A stretch of DNA of 64,000 bases from Bugula neritina (taxonomy: Eukaryota > Animalia > Bryozoa): assembly GCA_964035545.1 (NCBI GenBank), contig OZ037773.1, forward strand, positions 2,199,751-2,263,750, written 5' to 3'. This document shows, one piece after another, positions 3,751-29,613 of this stretch (its first letter is position 1; the number at the start of each line of letters is the position of its first letter). The position numbers and the translations under genes are program-made. The notes beneath the pieces were generated by a model. The model was not told the DNA's origin. It worked only from the letters and a program-made list of their open reading frames with translations, and ran no database searches.

Positions 3751-4311
<561 letters not shown>

Positions 4312-4407
<96 letters not shown>

Positions 4408-4424
4408 ACATATATATATATATA
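4312..4424. repeat. (TA)n microsatellite
   Basis: Near-perfect TA tract. Confidence 0.98.
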
Positions 4425-5979
4425 CAATAACAATATAATAACAATATAGTTCATATCAAATAATGTTATGCAATGGTATTTGATACTGCGACTGCTTTCT
4501 ATAAAACATTTTATAGTTGTACCATTTTTAGGTAATATAAATGAGGATGGAAACTTGTGGTTAATTTTATATTCCTGTTATCATAAAATATGAATATAAA
4601 TTTCACAAAAAGCTTTATACAATATCAAGATATTCATATATTTTAGCTATCATCTACAGACTGTGTGAGGGTCGTACAATTTTGTTTTTTTTTTAATTTG
4701 TGACGACAAATTTTGGAATTTCTGATCACCTGTTTCCAGTCGGCTCTGTAATCCTTGTATTACAAAACTAACAGTATTGCTGACTTTCATTGCATGCTAT
4801 TCTTAGCTACTGCAACACTCATGCTGTGTAATAACTGGGCTAGCTTCATGATGAAAGAGTGTTGCAGCAGCTAAGGATAGCATGTGCCGGGGAATTTTTA
4901 AATTATTTTTCTTGAGTAGAATTTAAAGCTTATTTGACAGTTTATAGAGTACCGAGTAGCTTTCAGTTAAAGTAATATGAGCCTATGCAATCTCTGCCAG
5001 CATTAATCTTGCTCTAACAGATTATATTGATTTCAGTATTGATTAATCAAATTTAGGATGTCAATGTTTTCACAAACTGCTGCTTTTTCAATAAAATGCA
5101 TTTTTCATTTTCAACGAATGAAAATTTATCTAATCATAAATGAAAACAAAGGTCACTGTATTATTGCTGTTTTAGAAAAGATTAAATCGAAAAAGCTGAA
5201 AACGATATTGGAAGTTGAAGATCAAATGAACTCAATACAGAAACAGAGGGCTGTTACTACTCATACGAATAAAAGTATTTACTGGTTATAGCATATGCAT
5301 GGAATTTCTGCTAAAAATAATGATAATAGTATTAGACCATCGGCAATAATAGTTAAAACTTTAACTTATGTCTGCTAAATTGTGAAAATGTGCTATTTTA
5401 ATGTTTTATTTCAAAACCATAATTATTATAATTGATTCATTTTTGTCAAATTTATTTTATTTAGAAACAAAACAGTGTCAAGAAAATATGACATTTAGAA
5501 ATATACGATGCTTGCATGTTATATATTAGGGTGAATAAAATTGCGGACAAAAAATAAGCCATTACAAAAAAGGTGAATTGTCTTTTTGATTATCATACTA
5601 TAAATCATAATACAAAAATAAATATAGAATATGTATAGCAATGCTAAAGTATTGTTTATAAAGCAAAGATTTTATCTCAACCAAAGCGTTCAGTAAACAA
5701 ATAAAATTCCTTGAGAGAAAATTGGAATAGAGTTGTACACAAGGAGTAGAAGGTCTTATCAAGTAATCAATAACGGAAAGTTCAGTTAGAAATGCTTGTC
5801 AACAGCCAATCAAATTTCAGATCTCAACCAGTAGGCATTTGGCTACAGTTAATGTTTTTGTGCCTCAACTTAAATAAGTTTAGTTAAGTAATATAGGCTT
5901 AGAGTTTTATGTTAAGGGAAATAGTTGGTTAAACTCAGCCATCTGGATAGAAAGAGAATATGAAGTGATGGAACTGATT

Positions 5980-8900
5980 CTACCAGCGTTTTCCTTGCCT
6001 GAGGTGGCAGTCATAAGTACCCTTGCCATGCTTATTCTTTATAATCCAGAAAGAATCAGTGATTTTCCCATTCAGTTCATCATCAACCTACACAATATTC
6101 ACACAAATAGAGAACAGGGAATATAAATATGAATGCATAAAAATTGTGTGAATATTTGTTGAATGACTTGGGACCAGAAGGGCAATTATTGATTTTGAAT
6201 GACTGTATTGATAATCATGGCATGCCGACATATTAATGAAAACACACAATAAAACTTTCCCATGTCGTTATTTTAATATTCATCACTTACCCATTCAACA
6301 AATATGTGGGTGGAGTTACTGATATGGAACTTATTGTACCCATAGTTACGGACTCGATATGCACTCCAGAAAGGTTCGTCTTTGGTGAAAGGACTGTGCT
6401 CAGCATACATCCCCTGTAAATAGTAAGTATATACATCCCATGTAAATAGTAAGTATATACATCCCATATAAATAGTAAGTATGTACATCCCATGTAAATA
6501 GTAAGTATGTACATCCCATATAAATATTAAGTATATACATCCCCTGTAAATAGTAAGTATATACATCCCATGTAAATAGTAAGTATATACATCCCCTGTA
6601 AATAGTAAGTATATACATCCCATGTAAATAGTAAGTATATACATCTCCTGTAAATAGTAAGTATATACATCCCATGTAAATAGTAAGTATGTACATCCCC
6701 TGTAAATAGTAAGTATGTACATCCCATGTAAATAGTAAGTATATACATCCCATGTAAATAGTAAGTATATACATCCCATATAAACAGTAAGTATATACAT
6801 CACATGTAAATAGTAAGTATATACATCCCATGTAAATAGTAAGTATATACATCCCATGTAAATAGTAAGTATGTACATCCCATGTAAATAGTAAGTATAT
6901 ACATCCCATGTAAATAGTAAGTATGTACATCCCCTGTAAATAGTAAGTATGTACATCCCATGTAAATAGTAAGTATATACATCCCATGTAAATAGTAAGT
7001 ATATACATCCCATATAAATAGTAAGTATGTACATCCCATGTAAATAGTAAGTATATACATCCCCTGTAAATAGTAAGTATATACATCTCCTGTAAATAGT
7101 AAGTATATGCATCCCCTGTAAATAGTAAGTATATACATCCCATGTTTGTTTGTTTGTTTGTTTGGTTTATTTCATCAAAGGTATTTAATAACACAAGGAC
7201 ATTAGAAAATGCCAAGGAGGCGATGATGAGGCCCATTGCGCTATAGCCTAGCTAGTCATGCGCGGGCCAACACGAGCTGACAGCGACTCTATCCAGAAAA
7301 ATACAAAAAAAATACAACTATTCTAACAGATAAAGCCTCAGCTTCCTCCCAAATTCATTAGGGTTGCTAATTGACCGTAAAGGGATTGGCAGTTCATTCC
7401 ATAGTGCCACCTCCTGATAACAGTTTCTTCTGTGACCTGCTGCTGTTTGAGAGTGAGGAAGGGGGAGATTTATGAATGATTGACGTGTATTGATAGAGTG
7501 AGTGGGAAAAAAATTGTCAGAGTAGAAAAAAGAATGAGCTTTCTTTAACACTTTAAAACGGTAAATCTGGTATATTGAGAGAACTTTATGCTTAGTAAAT
7601 AGAGGCGCTGATGGATGGTCAAACGGTTTTTTGTTCATGATACGCATTACCTTTTTTTGAAAAATAAAAATCTTGTTTAGATGGGTATTAGCTGCATTTC
7701 CCCAGGCCTCTGCACAATAATTTAACTTGGAATTGATGAAAGAATTATATATCAAAAGTAAAATTTTTTGAGGGAGATATTCAGAACATCGGTATATTAA
7801 TCCACTAAGTGGTCGTAATTTTGTAAGTAGGTTTGAGATGTGCAAGCTCCAATTTAAATTTTTATCTATTTGTACACCTAGAAAAGTTATGCTGTTAGAG
7901 TAATTTATAGGTCTTCTATTTAATAATATACAGTTTTCTAGAATTTGAAAAGGATTTTGGTAGTTTTTTAAAACAATATAGTTGCATTTTTCATAGTTTA
8001 TAGTGAGTTTGTTTTTATTGCACCAAATTGACAGAGAGTTTAGATCTTGATTTATAGCTTCCAAATGGGAGTTCAAATCTTTTGATTCAAAAAATAAATT
8101 AGTGTCGTCGGCATAGAAAATGGGATTAAAAAGTTTAAATTGTTGAGCAAGATCGTTTATATATATCAAAAATAAGGTAGGGCCCAAGACAGATCCCTGG
8201 GGAACCCCACAGGTCACTGATCGTGAACTTGATAAGGTTGCATTTACTAGTGTGGAATGACTTCGGTTTGATAGGTAGTTAGCAACCCATGACACTGTGG
8301 ATTCACTAAAACCAAGTTTTCTCATTTTTGCAAGTAAAATATTGTGATTTATGGTGTCAAAAGCCTTACTAAAATCTATAAAAATTCCGAGAACGCAATT
8401 TCCATTGTTAAAAGCTTCGAGCGTATTATTTTTAAATTTAACAACAGCATCTGCAGTACTTAAATTTTTTCGAAAGCCATATTGATTCTTAGAAATCAAA
8501 TTTTTAGATTCTAAAAAGTTTAAAATTTGATTGTTAACAATTTTTTCAAGTATTTTACTAAAAATGGGGAGGATTGAAATAGGGCGGTAGTTTTCACATC
8601 TGTCATGAGAACCTTTTTTGTAGAATGGTAATATTTTAGCAGTTTTAATTTGCGCTGGAACAATTTTTTCTTCTATGCTTTTGTTAAATAAATAGGCAAG
8701 TGGTGTAGATAGTGAAATTTTGCAAAATTTGATAAGTTTAGTCGGGATATTGTCTAAACCTATAGCTTTCTTGGAATCTAGTTTTTCAATGATCTCAATT
8801 ATTTGAGATTCATCAGTTTTTTTTAAATGAAATTCTTCTTTAGTAATATTTGTCAACATTGAGTAGGTATCGGAGTTCGAATTTGTAAAATTTGAAGCTA

Positions 8901-11900
8901 GTTTTTGGGCTATTGTTGAAAAATACAGATTGAAATTGTTAGCTATATCCATATTGCTATCTAGCATGGTCTCAGAGTCCTCAACCGAATACAGTTTTGA
9001 TGAAAAGCATCTTTTGTTTAGTTTGGCTTTCCCTGTTTGTTCATTTATAAGTACCCAAAGCTGCGAACTGTTACAATTGCTAATAAAAGCTTTAAAATAA
9101 TCATATTTAGCGGTTCTCAGATCAGCATTCAAATTATTTCTAAAAGCATTATATCTTTTTAAAATCTTTTTATTCATTTTATGTAAATAGTAAGTATATA
9201 CATCCCATGTAAATAGTAAGTATATACATCCCATGTTAATAGTAAGTATATACATCCCCTGTAAATAGTAAGTATGTACATCCCATATAAATAGTAAGTA
9301 TGTACATCCCCTGTAAATAGTAAGTATGTACATCCCATGTAAATAGTAAGTATATACATCCCATATAAATAGTAAGTATGTACATCCCCTGTAAATAGTA
9401 AGTATATACATCCCATGTAAATAGTAAGTATGTACATCCCATGTTAATAGTAAGTATATACATCCCATGTAAATAGTAAGTATATACATCCCATATAAAT
9501 AGTAAGTATATACATCCCATATAAATAGTAAGTATATACATCCCATGTAAATAGTAAGTATATGCAGTTATTAAACATACAGCTAGCAAACATACATACA
9601 CCCCCCTCCCCCCCCCCCCCCCACAGCTGTTTATCAACTAACAACACCAAACATAATAAGTTTACATTCAGTCCCAATAAAATCATAGTTTTTACCAAAA
9701 ACACTGCATATTCCGTCATACAACTTCTTATTCATTTATCATATATGAACTTTGCAGGTTCAACAAATTAAGAAATAATATTTGAATACTTTTTCAAGGC
9801 CACCCGATGGTCACAGGTTTTGATAATACTCTTGGTCCAAAAAGTTTAATTTCATCTTTCACATTTTTTGTTCACACTTCACATATTGTAGGATATGAGT
9901 ACAGCCAATTAATCTTGCTTATGCTGCCATAGAATATTTCAAAATTCTAAGCAACCAATCAGGTGCTAGCAAGTGATAGACTTACAGCTGATCCAGTTAT
10001 AATATGAATGGGTGCATTTGGTTCAGTGTACGGGTGGTCATAACTTCCATTACATATCTACAAATTTATTAAAAACACACTAACACTAAATTGTTGACTC
10101 CTGTATAACATCATAACCACATAAAACAAAGTAAATAATAAAATTACTGGAAACTAAAAGCAATATAATAAAATACAATGTCTTATCACAACACTTACAT
10201 TAAATGAATATAAGTAGAGTTAGGTGACAATAATAATATACTATCAGATGTAGCCAAATTATACAATCAACCATGGTATTTTCAGCAACACAAAGGATTG
10301 ATATAAGATAGTAAAATACAATGACAATGCATTAACCTATTTATAACTGAAACAGAATTAAATAATTCAGTACAAAATTGAGTTAAAGTTCACAATTAAG
10401 TAGTGAAAGCAATACTATAGTTTCTGGCTTTTAGTCAGTAACAAAGCAGTTACTGGGTTGGGGTATGAAATAGAAGGGTGCCTTCATGAAATCCTGAGAA
10501 CTTATCCTAGCAAGCACAGAATGCTGCAAGTTTTCTATATAACTATATAAGTTGATAGAAAATACAAACCTTTCTATTATAAAGAGGCCAGGACCGTTCG
10601 TAGAAATGTTCGTGTGCTCCGATATAAATATCAACCCCGGAGTCATAGAACAGATCTTCAAACGCATACCTTGTCTATAAACAAATGTTACATAATTGAA
10701 CAGCTAAATTAGTGGAAAGGTATAACAAAAATAACTATACAAAGTAAACAATTATTATAGTAATATTAAATATTATCGTTATATAATACTATTATTTTAT
10801 TATATAGTGTTTTATTTTTACAAGAGGCACAGTATACAAGCTAAATAAAATCATGATATGCGTTTATTTAGTTTTTACAGCCTGAGAAGTCTACTTCAAT
10901 TCTTAAAAACCGAGGCAGTGATATCAGCATGGGCAAAAGAACTCCGCACATCTCATCTATTCACGCAGTTTATGAGAATCACTGTTATGCATACCAGGGT
11001 AGTATAAAGTAAACGCTTTTTGCACCGAGACAAACATAGATTTACATGTCAGTAAAGTACTTACAAAACCTTCATAGTACGTGCAGTCATTAGCATTTGC
11101 ATTTGAGCAGTACATCGGTTTGTGACCTAAGACTATCAACCAAGGTCGTTCTGCTCGATTTTCATTCGCCTTCTATAGACAAAAGAGTGAAAACTTACAC
11201 GATGAATAAATAATTATTAAAAAGTGATTGGACACACAGCATACTAAATTAATTCAATTGTACAATTATCTAACTATTTTTAGAAATGGCCAATTGGATG
11301 ATATTACCTTTAAATCTTCCTTCAGCCATTTTTTCTGTTTACCAATAAGTCCTGGCCCTGTGATATCTTGAAAGAAATAGATTTCAGTGTTGATTGTGAT
11401 GATGTGAGCCGGCCCATAATCAAAGCTACAACACACAGCATTAATATGTTTATTATAGTACCCTAAAAGAGGACACAACTTCAATTTATGCAATAGTTAG
11501 TTGAAATTTTAGAGTATTTATTTACTAGCTTTGATATGATTTCGATAATTTGCTGTTAGAAAGCAATAAGACAAAATGTAATTTGCTCATATGAGAGCTT
11601 GTTACTATTTCGTTAACTTAAGAAAGTATGCAAAACTAAAGCAAAATCACCAGTTACAATAGATATGAAACGAAATAGGTCTGCATACAGTAAAATAGAG
11701 TAATAGTATAATAATGTACTGCCAACAAAGCAGTACATTATGAGGGAACTAAAATAGATATCAAATATCAAATCTTAGACTTTGAAATGAAAACGAGTCC
11801 AATATGCTTTTATTTATTAGTTTGTTATCAGCATTGGCCCAGGTCAATAGTTTACAAATCCATGTCATTACTGACTGCATGGTGCAGTCTCCCAACTCAT

Positions 11901-14900
11901 GGAGAGAAAAACATAACAAATAACAGTAATATAACAGTAGAAAGTAACACAATATTCACGTGATAATGACCTACTTATAATGCTAAAGGCTGTGAATTGT
12001 TCTTTTAGTTATCATCAGCTTTTAATGAATTCAACATTGAGAACAATAATATGCTGAGGTTGAGCCATGGCAACAATTGTTTATCATGGCTTAGCATGAG
12101 ACATTTTCACTACAATGATCATTGAACCCGAGCAGAAAGGTTATTCATGACAAAATTTTCTACAAAAGAACTTAATACCACTGAAAAGTTATCACTGCTG
12201 TATCACTAATAACTAACACTGTATCACTAATAACTAACACTGTATCACTAGTTACTAACACTGTATCACTAATAACTAACACAGTATCACTAGTTACTAA
12301 CACTGTATCACTAATAACTGACACTGTATCACTAGTAACTAACATTGTATCACTAATAAAGTTAACACTGTATAACTAGTAACTAACACTGTATCACTAG
12401 TAACTGACATTATATCACTAGTAACTAACACTGTTTAACTAACACTGTACCACTAATAACCGAGACTGTATAAACCCACCTGTACCACAATCCTTCACCA
12501 TCTCCTCCTTTCTTAGGCATGGAGAACCTGTTTCTATAGTTACTAAAGTTATAGCCTCTCTCATGATTGCCCACTGCTGTCATATACGGCACGTAGGCAG
12601 CAACGCTCTGTATCTGGTCCATAAACATGTCACCTATTCTTGCATTTTGCTACAAATATAGAATTCAGCCACTCAGAGCAGAACTACCAACATTTTACTT
12701 AGAAGCAGTAAGGGAAAAATTGACATAGCCTAAGTTCTTTAATTTTATATTAAATTTTGGTTTGGGGCGCGGGGTTGAAATTCTTGCGAGAACATAACTT
12801 CTTTTGCTACATTTTTAATCTAGAACACAGGCTTTTCTCAATTTCTCCATTCCTGCACCTACCTCCAACATTTTATATCTAAACTTTGCTCATTACTCTG
12901 TTTTATAAGCTATATAATTACATTTAAATATTTTAAATTCATACAGAATGGAACAAATGACATTCTTTTTGTAAATGTATAAATCATTATATTAATATAT
13001 AAATTATAATAAAACTTTAGCACAAAAAACTAAATTGCCAGTGTAAGTGTTTGAACTCCCCAACAGTTTTGTGAAAATACAAGCCTAATTTTGAACTAAA
13101 CAGCTGCTCAAAAACAGGAAGTTCAGTTGAAAGTATTTAGACGGATGACATTGTATTCAGTATACTCACGTCTTCCATATTATATGCAAAGTCACCTAAA
13201 ATATATAATATATTGCTGAATATCATTACTATAATATAAGTTACAGCATATTTACTAAACATAACATACAAAAAACATACATGTATTTTCACCAGTTTGG
13301 GCTACTGTCACATGTTCTTCTACATCATAAAATATTATACATTATACTTTTCTAATATTAACCTGCATATGTATAATAGCATGCAATTTTACTACTTGCT
13401 AGCGTGACATGTACTTTTACTACTTGCTAGCGTAACATGCACTTTTACTACTTGCTAGCGTGACATGTACTTTTACTACTTGCTAGCGTGACATTCACTT
13501 TTACTACTTGCTAGCGTGACATGCAATTTTTGGAAAACATATCATTGTGCAATACTTATCCATATGCTTAGCCACCTTCTACTAACATATATAAACAATA
13601 CCTGTTCCACATGTGGAATGTGGTACAATTTTCTAGACTTTTGTATCAAGTTAGTATAAAAGTAGATATGGTACTTTATTTATACACATTAGTTTACTAC
13701 CATATTATACCACACAGCTCTACAATAAAACACTATTATCTATCACAACAGGACATCCCTTGATTTTAATTCTGATAGAGATATCACGATATTTTCAGAA
13801 CTTTTTGAAAGAACCGACATTATTTTAACTTTGTAACTCGCTAATAGGAAGTGATGTCATTTAATACATTACGCGATCATTTTTCAAACAGTGCCCTACA
13901 CAAATTATTTGTATGAGTAACTTGATTTCAACTGGTACCTAGAAAAATATGTGCTACGAAATTTGAGTTATGTTTTTACAAAAAAAAACTTTACCTCAAC
14001 AAAATACATACCAAAATTTAATTATTATGTAACTGACTTATGAAGCATTACAAAAGATTCAGCTAAAATAGCAAGACCAGTATGAAAATACATTCACTTT
14101 TTAAAAATATACATAAGTTAATTTTAAAACTAGTTAAATTGCAATAAAACACAAGCCCAAGTTAGCTATTTATCTAAATCCATTCCTTTTTATACTTAAA
14201 CCTAAGTCAGAAGACTTGACGACTCAAGATTACTTGAAAACATCCACGGGTTCATAAACCTAGCTATGAAGCCTTTGCAGTAGGCTGAATAGACTTGTAC
14301 TAACATACGTTGCAACATTGTAATAGCACATTATATTATACTGTGACATTTTAATGACATATAATCCTAGACTTAGAACTCAGGAACAGCTGACAACCTA
14401 TTATAGGACTGGTGACTCACCCACATGAAACACGGCATCAATTGATCTCATCTCAGCCTCTGTCTGAAGTCTACCGATAGATCTACCATTTACATTGCCC
14501 AAGTCCCCGTAGATGGCCACAACTGGTGACCAGTCGGGCCCTGTGATAGGGGCCCGGTATGAGAAGATAGCTGACCAACCGGCATCTTCATTCCCAACAC
14601 GATAGTCTGTAACGTACAGGAAAGTTAAATAACTATAACTGTTTTGACTCCAATATCTGACTTATTTTGTAAAATGGACTCAATGTATATTGTCATAATA
14701 GTAAGTGACATAAAAATTACTGTAGAATTTTGCTGGTTTCAAATTGGTCATGGTAGCTCTGTGTATGAATAGCTGACGCTTTTCTGTCCCTCCATCAGTA
14801 AAAAGAGTTACTGTAGCATTTGCCTCTTTCCACAAAGAAGTGCCTTGAAGATTGTATTGTACGACTCCTTTAGTATTTTGAAAAGTTGTCCAGGTTGCAA

Positions 14901-15413
14901 CCATATCGCCATTGTATTCTACAACATACACAGCAGCTAACTCGATAAACAAACTCTGGTATATGTTTATAAAAATTAATAAGGGTAAAAACTGACATTT
15001 TTGAAACAGCCAAAAATATTTTTAAAAAAATTAGTAGCATAGACACTGTGAACTGCTTTGAAATATGTGCATTATAACTATTTTAATCTTTATAAAACTG
15101 AGACATTGTTCACTATCAATACATATTAGCATTATGTAATACGTCACTAAATCTCAAAATGAGAAGCTTAGGATCTGGCTGTTTAAATTATAGAGTGTTA
15201 CTTGCCTCCTATGGATAGATGCACTTGGCGAGGGTATCGAAGGTCTTGTGGGAAAGGAAAATCAGTTGCACCAACAGACAGAATTTTATCAGAGTCAGCA
15301 TTTGATTTTAAACTTGGAATGTAAGTCTTGAATAAACCGCCAACAGCAGACACTGAGATAATTGAGGCACTAAATAACAATAGTGCACAGCAGGAGAAAA
15401 GCTGAACATGCAT
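5980..15413 (-). CDS. ACP7: Purple acid phosphatase (ACP7/PAPL-like), copy A, 473 aa. Exons 15413-15206, 14918-14721, 14606-14421, 13195-13170, 12649-12480, 11425-11308, 11172-11065, 10674-10570, 10057-9986, 6413-6291, 6087-5980
   Basis: Signal peptide, FN3-like N-domain, and metal-ligand motifs GDLG, GDFAY, GNHE, VLGHKPMY, GAHEH. Exon phases are consistent with no stops. Intron 1 is GC-AG. Confidence 0.92.
6408..7143 (-). repeat. 26-bp minisatellite, downstream part (~28 units), made of the ACP7 exon-10 splice acceptor
   Basis: Sense unit ATATACTTACTATTTACA(G/T)GGGATGT; present as a single copy in paralog B at ~22665-22690. Confidence 0.97.
7144..9180 (-). mobile_element. 5'-truncated CR1/L2-group LINE with intact RT frame (stop at 7318), 3' UTR and (CAAA)n tail
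   Basis: Motifs NYRPISILP, QYGFR, DFSKAFD, GVPQGSVLGP, YADDT, FLGV.ID..LNW. No endonuclease domain. AATAAA at 7166-7171 (minus strand) followed by (CAAA)n. Absent from the right arm. Confidence 0.95.
9181..9563 (-). repeat. 26-bp minisatellite, upstream part (~15 units)
   Basis: Same unit as 6408-7143, with repeat phase continuous across the LINE. Confidence 0.97.
12197..12470. repeat. ~21-22-bp intronic minisatellite next to the ACP7-A exon 5 donor
   Basis: (AACACTGTATCACTARTAACT)n, about 12 copies; only about 4 in copy B at ~19838-19925. Confidence 0.9.
13378..13527. repeat. ~30-bp intronic minisatellite (mirror at ~18816-18936)
   Basis: Repeats of CATGYACTTTTACTACTTGCTAGCGTGA. Confidence 0.9.
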
Positions 15414-16611: not shown

Positions 16612-19600
16612 CGCAACATAATAATATTATATTATTTTATAACCCTAGTTGTTATTATTAGAGTCATCTGCTCAAAATGAGCCCTTTCAGAAAAACATTT
16701 AATTGTATGAATTTTATAGCCTCTGATTTAGGAGTTTTTTCACAGTTACAAATTTACTGTAAAAACAATTATCAAATTTTAATACATATTCTATTTTAGT
16801 GGCTTTCATATTAGATAATTTGCATTGATTAGGTATTTTCTATGTTTCAACTCACGGGGCGTGGCTAGAAGGTAAATAAAAATAAACATTCAAGCACGTG
16901 ATTCTCCTTTACCTTCTCCTTTTGTTTATAAGCAATTCTTCGCTAGCGATGTAATAACCCACCGAGTAGTAGTAATAGTAACTAAATCATAAGGCTCAAT
17001 TTCCGCAAACTTAACCCTTGTTTGAACACTTATCTAAATTATCTAATGTATTTTAATTATCGTACAGTCACAGTGGTGCGCAAAGGTTAGCCGCAAAAGT
17101 TTTTGATAGACTTCGATTAGAATAAAAAGTAAAATTTTCCTATTCACTTACTCATAACTCATAAGTCATAGGCCATAGCCGTTGCGACTGTGATTGTCAT
17201 TGTGAGTATCAGTATAATTCATTCATTGTGATAGTTGTTCTTATTGTGATTGTCATTGTGATACTAATTTTCGATTGCGTTTGACTTTGACTCAATGTCG
17301 GCGTCATTCTGACTCTCGATAAAGGTCACTGAGGCACATTCACATTGAATTTGATTCACATCGCCGAGCAGAGTGAAGCTGAAAGTTAAAGTCGTTTAGA
17401 GTTACGGTTACTGACAAAGACAGTATGACTGTGGGTGTATTTGTAAGCTACACTTGGTGCTGTAACTTGAATAAATTTTAGTTTTAGATTTCTGTGTCCA
17501 GAAGTTGAAGTGAACATCAATTCCAAGAATGCATGTTCAGCTTTTCTCCTACTGTGCACTATTGTTATTTAGTGCCTTAATTATCTCAGTGTCTGCTGTT
17601 GGCGGTTTATTCAAGACTTACATTCCAAGTTTAAAATCAAATGCTGACTCTGATATAGTTCTGTCTGTTGGTGCAACGGATTTTCCTTTCCCGCAAGACC
17701 TTCGATACCCTCGCCAAGTGCATCTATCTGTAGGAGGCAAGTAACACTCTATAATTTAAACAGTCGGATCCTAAGCTTCTCATTTTGAGACTCGGCGATT
17801 TATTACCTAATGCTAATATGTATTGAAAGTGAACAATGTCTCAGTTTTATAAAGATTAAAATAGTTATAATGCACATATTTCAAAGCAGTTCACAGTGTC
17901 TATGCTACTAAAATTTTTAAAAATAGTTTTTGCTGTTTCAAAAATGTCAGTTTTTACCCTTATTAATTTTTGTAAACATAATACCAGAGTTTGTTTATCG
18001 AGTTAGCTGCTGTGTATGTTGTAGAATACAATGGCGATATGGTTGCAACCTGGACAACTTTTCAAAATACTAAAGGAGTCATACAATACAATCTTCAAGG
18101 CACTTCTTTGTGGAAAGAGGCAAATGCTACAGTAACTCTTTTTACTGATGGAGGGACAGAAAAGCGCCAGCTATTCATACACAGGGCTACCATGACCAAC
18201 TTGAAGCCAGCAAAATTCTACAGTAATTTTTTTATGTCACTTACTAATATTATGACAATATACATTGAGTCCATTTTACAAAATAATGGTCAGATATCGG
18301 AGTTATTTAACTTTCCTTTACGTTACAGACTATCGTGTTGGGAATGAAGATGCCGGTTGGTCAGCTATCTTCTCATACCGGGCCCCTATCACAGGGCCCG
18401 ACTGGTCACCAGTTGTGGCCATCTACGGGGACTTGGGCAATGTAAATGGTAGATCTATCGGTAGACTTCAAACAGAGGCTGAGATGAGATCAATTGATGC
18501 CGTGTTTCATGTGGGTGAGTCACCAGTCCTATGATGGGTTGTCAGCTGTTCCAGAGTCCTAAGTCTAAGATCTAAGTCTAGGATTATATGTCATTACAAT
18601 GTTACAGTATAGTATAATGTGCTATTACAACGTTACAACATTATATTATAGTATAATATGTTACATTACTATTTTATATTAACTTGATACAAAAATCTAG
18701 AAAATTAGACTACATTCCACATGTGGAACAGGCATTGTTTATATATATTAATAGAAGGTGGTATGGCTAAGCATGTTATAGCCAAGTATTGCACAATGAT
18801 ATGTTTTCCGTAAATTGCATGTCACGCTAGCTAGTAGTAAAAAGTACATGTCACGCTAGCAAGTAGTAAAAGTGCATGTCACGCTAGCAAGTAGTAAAAG
18901 TACATGTCACGCTAGCAAGTAGTAAAAGTACATGCTATTATACATATGCAGGTTATTATTAGAAAAGTAAATGTATAATATTTTATGATGTAGAAGAACA
19001 TGTGACAGTAGCCCAAACTGGTGATAATGCATGTTTTCTGTATGTTATGTTTAGTAAATCTGCTGTAACTTGTATTATAGTAATGATATTCAACAGTATA
19101 TTATATATTTTAGGTGACTTCGCATATAATATGGAAGACGTGAGTATACCGAATACAATGTCATCCATCTAAATACTTTCAACTGAACTTCCTGTTTTTG
19201 AGCAGCTGTTTAGTTCAAAATTAGGCTTGTATTTTCACAAAACTGTTGGGGAGTTCAAACATTTACACTGGCAATTTAGTTTTTTTGTGCTAAAGTTTTA
19301 TTATAATTTATATATTAATATAATGATTTATACATTTACAAAAAGCATGTCATTTGTTCCATTTTGTATGAATTTAAAATATTTAAATATAATTATATAG
19401 CTTATAAAACAGAGTAATGAGCAAAGTTTAGATATAAAATGTTGGAGGTAGGTGCAGGAATGGAGAAATTGAGAAAAGCCTGTGTTCTAGATTAAAAATG
19501 TAGCATAAAAAGTTATGTTCTCACAAGAATTTTAACCCGCGCCCCAAACCAAAATTTAATATAAAATTAAAGAACTTGGGCTATCTCAATTTTTCCCTTT

Positions 19601-22600
19601 CTGCTTCTAAGTAAAATGTTATTAGTTCTGCTCTGAGTGGTTAAATTCTATATTTGTAGCAAAATGCAAGAATAGGTGACATGTTTATGGACCAGATAGA
19701 GAGCGTTGCTGCCTACGTGCCGTATATGACAGCAGTGGGCAATCATGAGAGAGGCTATAACTTTAGTAACTATAGAAACAGGTTCTCCATGCCTAAGAAA
19801 GGAGGAGATGGTGAAGGATTGTGGTACAGGTGGGTCAATACAGTGTCAGTTCCTAGTGATATAATGTCAGTTACTAGTGATACAGTGTTAACTTTAGTGA
19901 TACAGTGTTAGTTATTAGTGATACAGCAGCGATAATCTTTTCAGTGGTATTAAGTTTCTTGGTAGAATATTTTATCATGAATAACTTTCTGCTCGGGTTC
20001 AATGATTATTCTAGTGAGAATGTCTCATGCTAAGCCATGATAAACAATCGTTGTCATGGCTCAACCTCAGCATATTATTGTACTCAATGTTGAATTCACT
20101 AAAAGCTGATGATAATAACTAAAAGAACAATTCACAGCCTATAGCATTATAAGTAGGTCATTATCACTTGAATACTGTGTTACTTTCTACTGTGATATTA
20201 CTGTTATTTGTTATGTTTTTCCCTCCACCAGTTGGGAGACTGCACCATGCAGTCAGTAATGACATGGATTTGTAAACTATTGACCTGGGCCAATGCTGAT
20301 AACAAACTAATAACTAAAAGCATATTGGACTCGTTTTCATTTCAAAGTCTAAGATTTGTTATTTGATATCTATTTTAGTTTCCTCATAATGTACCACTTT
20401 GTTGACAGTACATTATTATACTATTACTCTACTTTATGCAGACCTGTTTTGTTTTATATTTATTGTAACTGGTGATTTTGCTTCGGTTTTGCATACTTCT
20501 CTAAATTAAAGTAAAAACAAGCTCTCATATAGGCAAGTTACATTTCATCTTATTGCTTTTTAACATCAGCAGATTATGTAAATTGTACCAAAGGTAGTAA
20601 ACAGATACTCTAAAACCTCAACTAACTATTGCATAAATTAGAGTTGTGTCCTCTTTTAGGGTATTATAATAAACATATTAAAGTTGTGTGTTGTAGCTTT
20701 GATTATGGGCCGGCTCACATCATCACAATCAACACTGAAATCTATTTCTTTCAAGATATCACAGGGCCAGGACTTATTGGTAAACAGAAAAAGTGGCTGA
20801 AAGAAGATTTAAAAGTAATATTATCCAATTGGCCATCTCTAAAAATAGTTAGATAATTGTACATTTTAAACCAATTTAGTATGCTGTGTGTCTTTCGCAT
20901 ATTTTTATCATTTTTCTCATTTATGCTACTTGATTCTTATCCAGTCACATGTTCCATGCTGATAATTTATTTCAAATGTAAATTTTAATTTTCTCAATTA
21001 TAGAAAGCAAATGAAAATCGAGCGGAACGACCTTGGCTGATAGTCCTAGGTCACAAGCCGATGTACTGCTCAAATGCAGATGCGGATGACTGCACATACT
21101 ACGAAGGTTTTGTAAGTATTTCATTCACATTTAAACTTATATTTCTCTCAGTGCAAAAGAAAGCCACTCTATACCATCCTGATATGTAAAACGGTTATTC
21201 TCATAAACTGCGTGAAAAGATGAGATGTGCCAAGTCAAACATTGTGTTTATTTGTTAGACTGTTCGCTTTTTTGCATTGAAAGTTCTGGGGCCGCTGCCG
21301 ACATCATAGCGTGCTATTTTACAAGTTTAGAGTAAACTTTTTAGGCTGTACACAGGAAATAAACCGAATACTGTGTATCTTGTTGAAATAAAAGGCTATA
21401 TAATGATATTATATAGTAATAATATATATAATATTACTTTGATAATTGTTTACTTTGTATATAGTTATTTTTGTTATACCTTCCCACCAATCTAGCTGTT
21501 CAATTATGTAACATTTATTTATAGATAAGGTATGCGTTTGAAGATCTATTCTATGACTCCGGGGTTGATATTTATATCGGAGCACACGAACATTCCTACG
21601 AGCGGTCCTGGCCTCTTTATAATAGAAAGGTTCGAATTTTCTATGAACTTATAGTTATATAGAAAACTTGCAGCATTCTGGCTTGCTAGGATAAGTTCTC
21701 AAGATTTCATGAAGACACCCGTCTATTTCATACCCCAACCCAGTAACTGCTTTGTTACTGACTAAAAGCTAGAAACTATAGTATTGCTTTCACTACTTAA
21801 TTGTGAACTTTAACTCAATTTTGTACTGAATTATTTAATTCTGTTTCAGTTATAAATAGGTTAACTCATTGTCATTGTATTTTACTATCTTATATCAACC
21901 CCTTTGTGCTGCTGAAAATAGAATGGTTGATTGTATAATTTGGCTACATCTGATAATATATTATTATAATATATTATTATTATCTACTTAATAAACAGTT
22001 GGCTATATTCATTTAATGTAGGTGTTGTGATAAGACATTGTAATTTATTATATTGGTTTTAGTTTCCAGTAATGTTATTATTTACTTTGTTTTGTGTGGT
22101 TATGATGTTCTACAGGAGTCAACAATCTAGTGTTAGTGTGTTTTTAATAACTTTGTAGATATGTAATGGAAGTTATGACCACCCGTACACTGAACCAAAT
22201 GCACCCATTCATATTATAACTGGATCAGCTGTAAGTCAATCACTTGCTAGCACCTGATTGGTTGCTTAAAATTTTGAAATATTCTATGGCAGCATAAGCA
22301 AGATTAATTTGCTGTACTCATATCCTACAATATATGAAGTGTGAACTAAAAATGTGAAATATGAAATTAAACTTTTTGGACCAAGAGTATTATCAAAACC
22401 TGTGACCGTCGGGTGGCCTTGAAAAAGTATTCAAATATTATTTAGTAATTTGTTGAACCTGCAAAGTTCATATATATATGATAAATAAATGAGAAATTGT
22501 ATGACGGAATATGCAGTGTTTTTGGTAAAAACTATGATTTTATTGGGACTGAATGTAAACTTATTATGTTTGGGATTGTTAGTTGATTAACAGCTGTGGG

Positions 22601-24566
22601 GGGGGGAGGGGGGCGTATGTTTGTTTGCTAGCTCTAGGGGGGCGTATGTATGTTTAATAACCGCATATACTTACTATTTACAGGGGATGTATGCCGAACA
22701 CGATGGTTTCACCAAAGACAAACCTTTCTGGAGTGCATATCGAGCTATTAACTATGGATACAATAAGTTTCATATCAGTAACTCCACTCACATATTTGTT
22801 GAATGGGTAAGTGATGCATATTAAAATAAGACATGGGGAAGTTTTATTGTGTGTTTTCATTAACATGTCAGCATGGTATGATTATCAATACTTGGTGAAG
22901 CACACCTGTATTCTGTAATTTACTGGATTAATTGTATAACAGTCATTCAAAATTAATAATTGCCTTTCTGGTCTCAAGTCATTCAACAAATGTTCACACA
23001 ATTTTTGTGCATTCATATTTATGTTCTCTTTTCTCTATTGGTGTAAATATTGTGTAGGTTGACGATGAACTGAATGGGAAAATCACTGATTCTTTCTGGA
23101 TTATAAAGAGTAAGCATGGCAAGGGAACTTATGACTGCCACCTCAGGCAAGGAAAACGCTGGTAGAATCAGTTTCATCACTTCATTTTCTCTTTGTATCC
23201 AGATGGTTGAGTTTAACCAACTATTTCCCTTAACATAAAACTCTAAGCCTATATTACTTAACTAAACTTACTCAAGTTGAGGCACAAAAACATTAACTGT
23301 AGCCACATGCCTACTGGTTGAGATCTGAAATTTGATTGGATGTTGACAAGCATTTCTAACTGAGCTTTCCGTTATTGATTACTTGATAAGACCTTCTACT
23401 CCTTGTGTACAACTCTATTCCAATTTGCTCGCATTGTTTGACAATATATTATACAAGGGATTTTCATTTGTCTACTAAAAGTTTGGGTGGAGATAAAATC
23501 TGTGCTTTATAAACAATACTTTAGCATTGCTATTTATGTTCTATATTTATTTTTGTATTATGATTTATAGTATGATAATCAAAAAGACAATTCACTCTTT
23601 TTAGTTTAATAGCTTATTTTTTGTCCTCAATTTTATTCACTCTAATATATAGTATGCAATCATCGTATATTTCTAAATGTCATATTTTCTTGACACTGTT
23701 TCGTTTCTAAATCAAATAAATTTGACAAAAATAAATTAATTGTAATAATTATGGTTTTGAGATAAAAGATTACTGTAGCACATTTTCACAATTTAGCAGA
23801 CATAAGTTAAAATTTTAACTATTATTGCCAATGGTCTAATACTATCATCATTGTTTTAGCTGAAATTCCATGCACATATGCTATATAGCCATTTAATATC
23901 TTGTTCATACGAAAAGTGGCAGCCCTCTGTTTCTGTGTTGAGTTCATCTAATCTTCAACTTCCAATATGGTTTTCAGCTTTTTCGATTTAATCTTTTCTA
24001 AAACAGCAATGATACAGTGAGTGACCTTTGTTTTCATTTATGATTAAATATATTTTCACTCGTTGAAAATGAACGTTGCATTTTATTGAAACAAAAGCAG
24101 CAGTTTGTGAAAACATTGACATCCTAAATTTGATTAATCAATACTGAAATCAATATAATCTGTTAGAGCAAGATTAATGCTGGCAGAGATTGCATAGGCT
24201 CATATTACTTTAACTGAAGGCTACGTGGTACTCCATAAACTGTCAAATAAGCTTTAAATTCTACTCAAGAAAAATAATTTAAATATCTTTAGCTGCTGCA
24301 ACACTCCTCCATCACGAAGCTAGCCCAGTTATTACACAGCATGAGTGTTGCAGTAGCTAAGAATAGCATGCAATGAAAGTCAGCAATACTATTAGTTTTA
24401 TAATACCAGGATTACAGAGCCGACTAGAAACAGGTGATCAGAAATTCGAAACTAATTCGAGATAATATGTTGTCACAAATTTAAATAAAAAACAAAATTG
24501 TTTGAGCAAACAGCCTGTAGATGATAGCTAATATATATGAATATTTTAATACTGTATGAATAAAGC
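16612..24566. repeat. Right arm of large inverted duplication
   Basis: For example 16660-16680 mirrors 16243-16263 and 24421-24446 mirrors 4717-4742. A spacer of ~300 bp lies at ~16307-16611. Confidence 0.93.
17529..23165 (+). CDS. ACP7: Purple acid phosphatase (ACP7/PAPL-like), copy B, 473 aa. Exons 17529-17736, 18025-18222, 18329-18514, 19114-19139, 19660-19829, 20697-20814, 21004-21111, 21525-21629, 22159-22230, 22684-22806, 23058-23165
   Basis: Same motifs as copy A (GDLG, GDFAY, GNHE, GHKPMY, GAHEHSYER). Exon lengths sum to 1422 nt in frame. Confidence 0.94.

Positions 24567-25399: not shown

Positions 25400-29613
<4,214 letters not shown>

Follow-up and report, generated by a model that had tools for sequence, protein, structure and literature searches.

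A very recent sense-oriented LINE insertion within amplified splice acceptors in intron 9 of a redundant ACP7-like gene of Bugula neritina

Results

The ACP7-like genes and the contents of intron 9

The window, that is, the whole stretch of 64,000 nucleotides analysed here (Bugula neritina contig OZ037773.1, positions 2,199,751 to 2,263,750), carries two intact copies, A and B, of an ACP7-like purple acid phosphatase (PAP) gene, each encoding 473 amino acids. The features on which the analysis draws are listed below in window coordinates, with a slash marking splice boundaries.

5980–15413, minus strand: copy A of the ACP7-like PAP gene, intact, with 11 exons that encode 473 aa (gene model and Pfam matches per exon)
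9986–10057, minus strand: copy A exon 9, ending in phase 0 as ..ATT ATA ACT GGA TCA GCT/gtaagt (..IITGSA)
9181–9563, minus strand: 26-bp minisatellite, upstream part, 14.7 units (TRF), with three ACAG/G acceptors
7146–9180, minus strand: 5′-truncated LINE copy, comprising AAAA at 9180–9177 and the LINE proper at 9176–7146, which finishes 3′ in a (CAAA)n tail
7318–9258, minus strand: 646-codon open frame following exon 9 if acceptor 9258 is used, stop codon at 7320–7318, within the ORF 7318–9546
7867–8619, minus strand: RVT_1 domain, residues 214–464 of the 646-aa frame (E = 5.4e-41)
7166–7171, minus strand: AATAAA at the LINE 3′ end, a motif only
6405–7145, minus strand: 26-bp minisatellite, downstream part, 28.5 units (TRF), with eight ACAG/G decoys
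6291–6413, minus strand: authentic exon 10 of copy A, encoding Metallophos_C (gene model and Pfam); the repeat unit derives from its acceptor together with its first 9 bases
22159–22806, plus strand: copy B exon 9, intron 9 (453 bp, without minisatellite and without LINE) and exon 10, the form present in the spliced contigs

The architecture of copy A is that of an ACP7-like PAP, with an N-terminal PAP domain, a metallophosphoesterase core and a PAP C-terminal domain. Its exons match Pur_ac_phosph_N (41.9 bits, cut-off 30), Metallophos_C (32.9 bits, cut-off 23) and Metallophos, the last scoring under its cut-off on single exons since each was scanned on its own. The N-terminus is signal-peptide-like, and the five PAP metal-ligand blocks (GDLG 169, GDFAY 198, GNHE 233, VLGHKP 316 and AHEH 358) all precede residue 397, the exact end of the product through exon 9 in the 11-exon model. 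All splice sites are canonical apart from the GC donor of intron 1, which copy B shares. These properties are those of the ACP7 and purple acid phosphatase family; the gene differs in being one of at least nine tandem ACP7-like paralogs on the same contig and in having, in copy A alone, a 43-unit acceptor minisatellite and a LINE in intron 9.

Copies A and B diverge with a dN/dS of 0.16 (dS = 0.11), a value that covers both lineages and reflects purifying selection. Copy A, being also intact, was thus a working gene until recently, and it may still be expressed in unsampled tissues. The exons of the two copies differ at 51 positions, for example 10604, 6019 and 6035, and exon 10 at 14 of its 123 nucleotides. 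Polarisation of the exon-10 differences with paralogs showed that copy A has retained the L015 and L016 state (HSPF) at two sites, the remaining sites being ambiguous, and gave no sign of decay specific to copy A as the cause of the excess.

A minisatellite of amplified acceptors

The minisatellite comprises approximately 43 units, and all 39 pattern matches for the array fall at the copy A locus, copy B containing a single unit at 22665–22692. The AG dinucleotide is kept in 12 units and lost in 31, where it reads ACAT or ATAT, and the twelve ACAG/G sites have a near-identical context from −30 to +6, four of the decoys matching the authentic site exactly. The three sites upstream of the LINE read TTTACAG/GGGATG, and the exonic sequence after them begins at 9388, 9310 and 9258. 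A further nine, counting the authentic 6413, lie 3′ of the LINE; the eight decoys among them (7115, 7089, 7063, 6933, 6699, 6647, 6595 and 6543) all lie within 700 nt on the 5′ side of the authentic site, and use of six of these would change the reading frame. The 26-bp unit is free of stop codons in all three sense frames.

A young copy of a non-LTR element

The LINE is oriented in the sense direction relative to copy A. Genome copies align to it from query base 5, and the AAAA at its beginning is absent from them, which places the start of the LINE proper at 9176. The repeat phase is unbroken across the insert, and a target-site duplication, masked by the tandem array, would be ACAT (4 bp) at most, or 26n+4 bp. 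In addition to the AATAAA at the 3′ end, sense-strand poly(A) hexamers (AATAAA or ATTAAA, as motifs only) are found within or at the edge of the element at 9174, 8649, 8019, 7924 and 7189. Compared with 11 others, the window copy shows 4 differences over approximately 2000 sites, against a dS of 0.11 between phosphatase copies A and B. These differences fall at codon positions 1, 3, 2 and 1, and the variant at site 8856 is common to contigs of the RNA runs; with four differences, a dN/dS comparison of the reverse transcriptase (RT) with its family has no statistical power.

At least 152 candidate members of the family are present in the genome, of which 40 were scored and share 99–100% identity. 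Their staggered 5′ truncation is apparent from the query starts (5, 61, 157, 213 ... 1321), and 34 of the 39 scored copies other than that in the window end at base 2032–2035, two being 3′-truncated (ends 1573 and 1174). The (CAAA)n tail varies in length among the 12 copies whose tails were compared. The longer copies have a common start approximately 1.5 kb further upstream; the full length is about 3.5 kb, with one 956-aa ORF that contains Exo_endo_phos and RVT_1. In copy L002 the endonuclease domain occupies residues 28–228, N-terminal to the RT, and P0001 is the same ORF at 99% identity. The closest solved relatives of the RT are the L1 ORF2p (9k6g, 8uw3; E about 2e-16) and R2. An RT domain, an N-terminal AP-endonuclease, a common 3′ end with a tail and dispersed copies identify the family as an APE-type non-LTR element, and in its single ORF, length, tail, staggered 5′ ends and many near-identical copies it resembles elements that are RTE- or CR1-like by architecture. 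The window copy departs from these in lacking the endonuclease and approximately 337 N-terminal residues, and the original prediction of an RT without endonuclease is thereby explained by the 5′ truncation at 9176. The family is clearly active, or was very recently active, in the B. neritina genome.

The PAP-RT reading frame

The locus had been proposed to encode a fusion of the PAP with the RT, formed by splicing from the end of exon 9 at 9986 into the array upstream of the LINE. The underlying coordinates (phase-0 end at 9986, acceptors at 9388, 9310 and 9258, ORF end at 7318 and AATAAA at 7171–7166) all check, and the 11-exon model reproduces a conceptual product of 397 + 646 = 1043 aa. The acceptor at 9258 is the only one of the three in frame with the RT ORF and reads GSA/GMYILTINMG.. 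to a terminal LLE, whereas those at 9388 and 9310 both belong to a second frame that, as predicted, runs into a stop, at 9238–9236. The fusion would keep the signal peptide and, again as proposed, all five metal-ligand blocks ahead of the RT, but would exchange exons 10–11, and hence Metallophos_C, for the RT; an AATAAA lies 84 nt 3′ of the 9258 acceptor.

Between them, the three acceptors cover two frames out of three, which gives a chance of about 2/3 for an in-frame site and, multiplied by 1/2 for the sense orientation, approximately 1 in 3. As the repeat unit is stop-free, an acceptor in frame is to be expected about one time in three, and the RT frame is open because the LINE copy is young. 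On these sequence grounds, the PAP-RT frame is an unremarkable coincidence of frames, not beyond chance. Among the best 120 RT relatives, no protein combines Metallophos with RVT_1; the length filter of this search, 340–1083 aa, would let a 1043-aa fusion pass.

Spliced RNA contigs

The RNA evidence consists of assembled contigs from three spliced, RNA-containing public runs of three studies (X2, X3 and X4). Such contigs lose rare variants and are silent on absence, strand and RNA ends, so that chimeric RNA at a low level may have escaped. Their depth was not taken as an expression level because the k-mers of the array and the LINE are multiplied by copy number, and the occurrence of these k-mers in the spliced runs may equally reflect carried-over DNA or pre-mRNA.

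Joints from 9986 to 9258, 9310 or 9388 were found in none of the contigs of the three runs, and the locus-specific segment 9177–9301, which is obligatory in any PAP-RT mRNA, is covered by no contig in X2, X3 or X4. The depth in the bin 9140–9301 is wholly due to LINE contigs whose match ends at 9176; these continue beyond this point into upstream LINE sequence outside the array, and therefore derive from other LINE copies. Judged by the refuting conditions set out with the original proposal (copy A silent, no reads entering the LINE), the contigs, within the limits of such data, speak against a nascent chimeric gene.

The exon 8–9 joint occurs in X3, X2 and X4 with the letters of copy B in exon 8, and the canonical 9–10 and 10–11 joints occur in X3. 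The only exit joint of exon 9 is the normal one and is of copy B type: at the X3 joint 6390/9985, the 22 letters between the two sides match exon 10 of copy B at 21 positions. The contig letters at the diagnostic positions 10604, 6019 and 6035 are likewise those of copy B, and no contig of A-type exon 8, 10 or 11 was seen in the three runs while copy B is well covered. One X2 contig (9963–10008) with a divergent end was considered as an alternative form of copy A and rejected, since its loose end maps to the paralog at G000:C9:2465550 (2 mismatches). Short array contigs are nevertheless present in the spliced runs (6408–6462, 6538–6618 and 7032–7111). Since the array is unique to the copy A locus, these come from copy A and could represent pre-mRNA, DNA carry-over or exonised repeats.

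Discussion

The locus is probably best explained as an incidental and very recent intronic LINE insertion in a redundant gene, which possibly cripples copy A, and not as a nascent gene. On this account, a 5′-truncated copy of a LINE family that is still active, or was so until recently, inserted in the sense orientation into the minisatellite, which arose in copy A through tandem amplification of the exon-10 acceptor. The open PAP-RT frame follows from a stop-free repeat unit, an RT frame kept intact by youth and a 1-in-3 match of frames. The pre-mRNA of copy A would face eleven near-identical decoy acceptors, the first two leading to the stop at 9238, as well as several sense-strand poly(A) hexamers, and given these copy A most likely yields aberrant RNAs, mostly nonsense-containing or prematurely ended, that are degraded. 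Within its redundant tandem family, copy A would thereby be hypomorphic or silent, and the argument that damage to it could be tolerated holds, with copy B intact and at least nine ACP7-like copies on the contig.

A related account, that of a gene trap, supposes that copy A is transcribed and that in some of its transcripts splicing joins 9986 to 9388, 9310 or 9258 and the 3′ end lies at a poly(A) site of the LINE, producing truncated or chimeric mRNAs and a minor in-frame PAP-RT without selected function. The decoys, near-identical to the authentic acceptor and encountered first, the hexamers on the sense strand, and the array-derived contigs among spliced runs all favour such splicing, for which there is also precedent in the exonisation, intron retention and cryptic polyadenylation that sense intronic LINEs are known to bring about (PMC3192792; PMC4859970). 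The presence of B-type and lack of A-type exon contigs likewise fits a loss of the A message at the contig level, yet the same lack also counts against transcription of copy A, and with the joint to a decoy missing, the segment 9177–9301 uncovered in X2, X3 and X4, and the LINE poly(A) sites being motifs only, the full account appears unlikely, even if the gene-trap half of the original interpretation is plausible.

Less probable still is that the LINE simply lengthens a harmless intron, with the authentic acceptor at 6413 still used because exon definition pairs it with the donor at 6290, and with copy A normal but unexpressed in the samples. The intact copy A, its canonical splice sites other than the GC donor common to both copies, the dN/dS of 0.16, the loss of AG in 31 of the approximately 43 units, and exon-10 differences that retain the HSPF state of L015 and L016 are consistent with this. 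However, contigs of A-type exons 8, 10 and 11 are absent from three runs where copy B is well covered, and the eight near-identical decoys closely precede the true acceptor, most of them frame-shifting.

It is very improbable that transcription of copy A in some tissue leads, where part of the pre-mRNA uses 9258 and the LINE poly(A) signal, to a secreted, C-terminally truncated PAP fused to an endonuclease-less RT. A nascent functional gene, in which the 1043-aa secreted protein is made and selection is beginning, is the least credible reading, its sole support being the open frame with the retained signal peptide and five metal-ligand blocks, against which stand the replacement of exons 10–11 and Metallophos_C, the position of 9258 as the third of three near-identical acceptors with an AATAAA shortly beyond, a divergence of four differences from the sister copies that leaves neither time nor signal for selection, the want of transcript support in the X2, X3 and X4 contigs (no 9986 joint, 9177–9301 uncovered, exon contigs all of copy B type), the absence of the architecture among the best 120 RT relatives, and the secretory pathway, where an endonuclease-less RT would have no obvious substrate.

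The incidental insertion favoured here can be compared with known systems. Intronic sense LINEs are associated with exonisation, intron retention, cryptic or premature polyadenylation and "gene-breaking" (PMC3192792; review PMC4859970, with Wheelan et al. 2005 as cited therein). The present locus is similar in its sense LINE, sense poly(A) hexamers and acceptor-like sites ahead, from which truncated or aberrant host transcripts would be expected. It differs in that the acceptors are tandem copies of the host exon-10 acceptor and are not supplied by the LINE, and in that no aberrant transcript was seen in the X2, X3 and X4 contigs. The element itself, unlike mammalian L1, is short, has a single ORF and belongs to an invertebrate-type genome. 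On paper, the arrangement of a host exon, an acceptor before an open transposable-element ORF and a resulting protein with host and element domains also recalls the SETMAR-type host-transposase fusions ("transposase capture"). Those, however, carry DNA-binding domains of DNA transposases and are transcribed, conserved across species and under purifying selection (bioRxiv 10.1101/2020.05.07.082677), whereas here the element part is an RT, the insertion is extremely recent and the chimeric RNA was not found in the contigs.

As it stands, a young LINE copy in an intron of a redundant gene is an ordinary event. Its cautionary value is that an open host-element frame, running across a stop-free repeat and a very young element copy, can be explained without selection. 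Were the 9986/9258 junction real in raw reads, the locus would offer a rare view of the capture of an RT by a host exon as it begins, and the fusion protein, if made, would be a newborn host-RT fusion that owes its existence to a minisatellite built from a splice acceptor of the host. The LINE family could be used as an insertion-polymorphism marker in B. neritina, and the minisatellite, which multiplies a real 3′ splice site approximately 43-fold with AG kept in 12 units, represents a natural experiment in acceptor choice.

Gene model of copy A and its paralogs

An ACP7-like model of 11 exons was built for copy A on the minus strand, and it translates without interruption into a 473-aa protein with the five purple acid phosphatase (PAP) ligand blocks at residues 169, 198, 233, 316 and 358. 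The introns are GT-AG throughout, except for the GC donor of intron 1 that is common to copy B (AG/GCAAGT, 15205-15204 in A and 17737-17738 in B).

Exons of copy A (gene model, minus strand; domains by Pfam)
15413-15206, exon 1
14918-14721, exon 2, Pur_ac_phosph_N
14606-14421, exon 3
13195-13170, exon 4
12649-12480, exon 5, Metallophos
11425-11308, exon 6
11172-11065, exon 7, Metallophos
10674-10570, exon 8
10057-9986, exon 9, ending in phase 0 after residue 397
6413-6291, exon 10, Metallophos_C
6087-5980, exon 11

Both copies are intact (dS = 0.11, dN/dS = 0.16) and about 90% identical over introns and exons, and the exon-10 differences between them give no indication of decay in copy A. Searches with exons 5 and 10 found at least nine ACP7-like copies on the same contig, a high redundancy that would make damage to copy A tolerable; the intact copy B and these further copies thus back the original prediction on this point. 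The paralogs lie at approximately 2.20-2.47 Mb of the contig, in the window and downstream (loci L015-L020 on G000:C9), and identical exon-10 peptides in the pairs L015/L016 and L018/L019 suggest recent segmental duplications. Similar TA/TATA-type microsatellites are found just beyond the A/B homology, bordering the A arm at 4300-4450 and the B arm at 28650-28765.

An amplified splice acceptor in intron 9

Tandem Repeats Finder detected two arrays of a single 26-bp unit, both 93% matching, on either side of the LINE.

Arrays of the 26-bp unit
6405-7145, part 1, 28.5 copies
9181-9563, part 2, 14.7 copies

The unit joins the terminal 17 bases of the intron to the initial 9 bases of exon 10. Intron 9 of copy B spans 453 bp and holds a single unit and no LINE, and all 39 genome-wide matches to a two-unit pattern fall inside the copy A locus; the array is a copy-A-specific amplification of the gene's own 3′ splice site. 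Its repeat phase is unbroken across the LINE, therefore the array is older than the insertion, for which the target duplication is ACAT at most or is masked by the repeat.

The AG of the acceptor is kept in only 12 of about 43 units, the remainder reading ACAT or ATAT; decoy acceptors may have been selected against, or a mutated unit may have been amplified. The twelve ACAG/G sites are near-identical in context from -30 to +6, and those at 9388, 7115, 6595 and 6543 show no difference from the authentic site at 6413 over this span. Of the eight decoys 3′ of the LINE, all no more than 700 nt from the genuine acceptor, six cause a frameshift.

A G-rich tract adjoins the first intron-9 unit upstream (9590-9625 in A, G13AG6; 22597-22645 in B, two shorter G runs), and contigs of the sequencing run X16 break at the intron-9 tract. 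Intron 5 contains another minisatellite, of 21-bp units, that starts about 40 bp past the exon-5 donor (12198-12442 in copy A, 11.6 copies; 19838-19926 in copy B, 4.3 copies). In copy A, expanded repeats adjoin two different splice sites.

The PAP-RT reading frame

Reading of the minus strand over 6300-10300 and the ORF list confirmed the predicted coordinates of exon 9, the acceptors and the reverse transcriptase (RT) frame. The first exonic base of the three TTTACAG/GGGATG sites is 9388, 9310 and 9258, respectively. Splicing of exon 9 to the last of these would add 646 codons up to the stop at 7320-7318, giving 1043 aa in total with RVT_1 in the added frame (E = 5.4e-41); exons 10-11 would be swapped out, and the Metallophos_C domain thereby lost. 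The transcription and splicing machinery reaches 9258 as the third acceptor, and the first two, 9388 and 9310, lead to a premature stop at 9238-9236 that arises solely from a variant unit (ATTAAC), the 26-bp unit itself being stop-free in all three sense frames. As the three acceptors are spaced by 78 and 52 bp, two of the three frames are sampled, which sets the prior for a match to the RT frame at about 2/3, with a further factor of 1/2 for sense orientation. The in-frame fusion is an unsurprising coincidence.

A young, 5′-truncated LINE

A DNA search of the 216-Mb genome with 9180-7146 as the query gave at least 152 candidates, and the 40 scored copies show 99-100% identity, staggered 5′ ends and a 3′ end common to nearly all; the (CAAA)n tails vary in length and give way to unrelated flanks. 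The other copies all match from query base 5, which places the LINE start at 9176 and makes the AAAA at 9180-9177 junction filler. Several copies continue in the 5′ direction for about another 1.5 kb, to a common start, and encode a single 956-aa ORF with Exo_endo_phos (28-228) and RVT_1 (524-774) domains; the window copy is 5′-truncated, starting near residue 338. The 956-aa protein is present in the public protein collection (P0001, 99% identity), where its relatives are APE+RT proteins of about 960 aa on contigs of about 3-4 kb, and the closest solved relatives are the L1 ORF2p and R2 proteins. No protein combining Metallophos and RVT was found among the best 120 RT relatives.

The window copy differs from 11 sister copies at four sites in about 2000 (8856, 8353, 7916, 7341), too few to give a dN/dS test any power, and the variant at 8856 is also found in contigs of the RNA runs. 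With at most 0.2% private change in the RT frame, the open frame is owed to youth and selection need not be invoked.

Transcript evidence

Eighteen runs from six studies were listed, all as contigs, and four of them (X2, X3, X4 and X16) were mapped to 5900-10750. X2, X3 and X4 carry spliced contigs and hence contain RNA, and the exon 8-9 joint is seen in all three. The sole joint out of exon 9 runs from 9985 to 6390 in X3, and the 22 letters between its two sides match exon 10 of copy B, not copy A, at 21 positions. The diagnostic sites 10604, 6019 and 6035 read as copy B in every contig, and the depth over A-type exon 10 is zero in both X2 and X4. An X2 contig diverging at 9963 was assigned to another paralog.

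The locus-specific interval 9177-9301, obligatory in any mRNA joining exon 9, array and RT, is covered by no contig in the four runs, and the depth of the bin 9140-9301 equals exactly the contribution of LINE contigs ending at 9176. Beyond 9176 these contigs pass into other sequence, with an identical loose end in each of the four runs, and they show 11 differences from the window copy; their source is longer copies elsewhere. As the array is unique to the locus, the short contigs of array sequence at 6408-6462, 6538-6618 and 7032-7111 derive from copy A; the repeat number multiplies their k-mers, and these contigs are indistinguishable from pre-mRNA or DNA carry-over. At the level of contigs, which cannot prove the absence of a transcript, copy A is silent and the LINE is not entered from this locus, the outcome that the original prediction named as refuting it.

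Possible consequences for copy A

The proposal of a nascent chimeric gene is therefore unsupported, the open PAP-RT frame being explained by youth and chance. An AATAAA lies only 84 nt past 9258 (9174-9169), and four more sense-strand poly(A) hexamers separate it from the predicted one at 7171-7166. Intronic sense LINEs are expected to yield aberrant or prematurely ended RNA (PMC3192792; PMC4859970), and the same would be expected of RNA from copy A, for which a non-functional gene-trap effect is plausible. The locus is thus a new instance of a well-known type of event, the intronic insertion of a LINE, and its one unusual feature is the splice-acceptor minisatellite.
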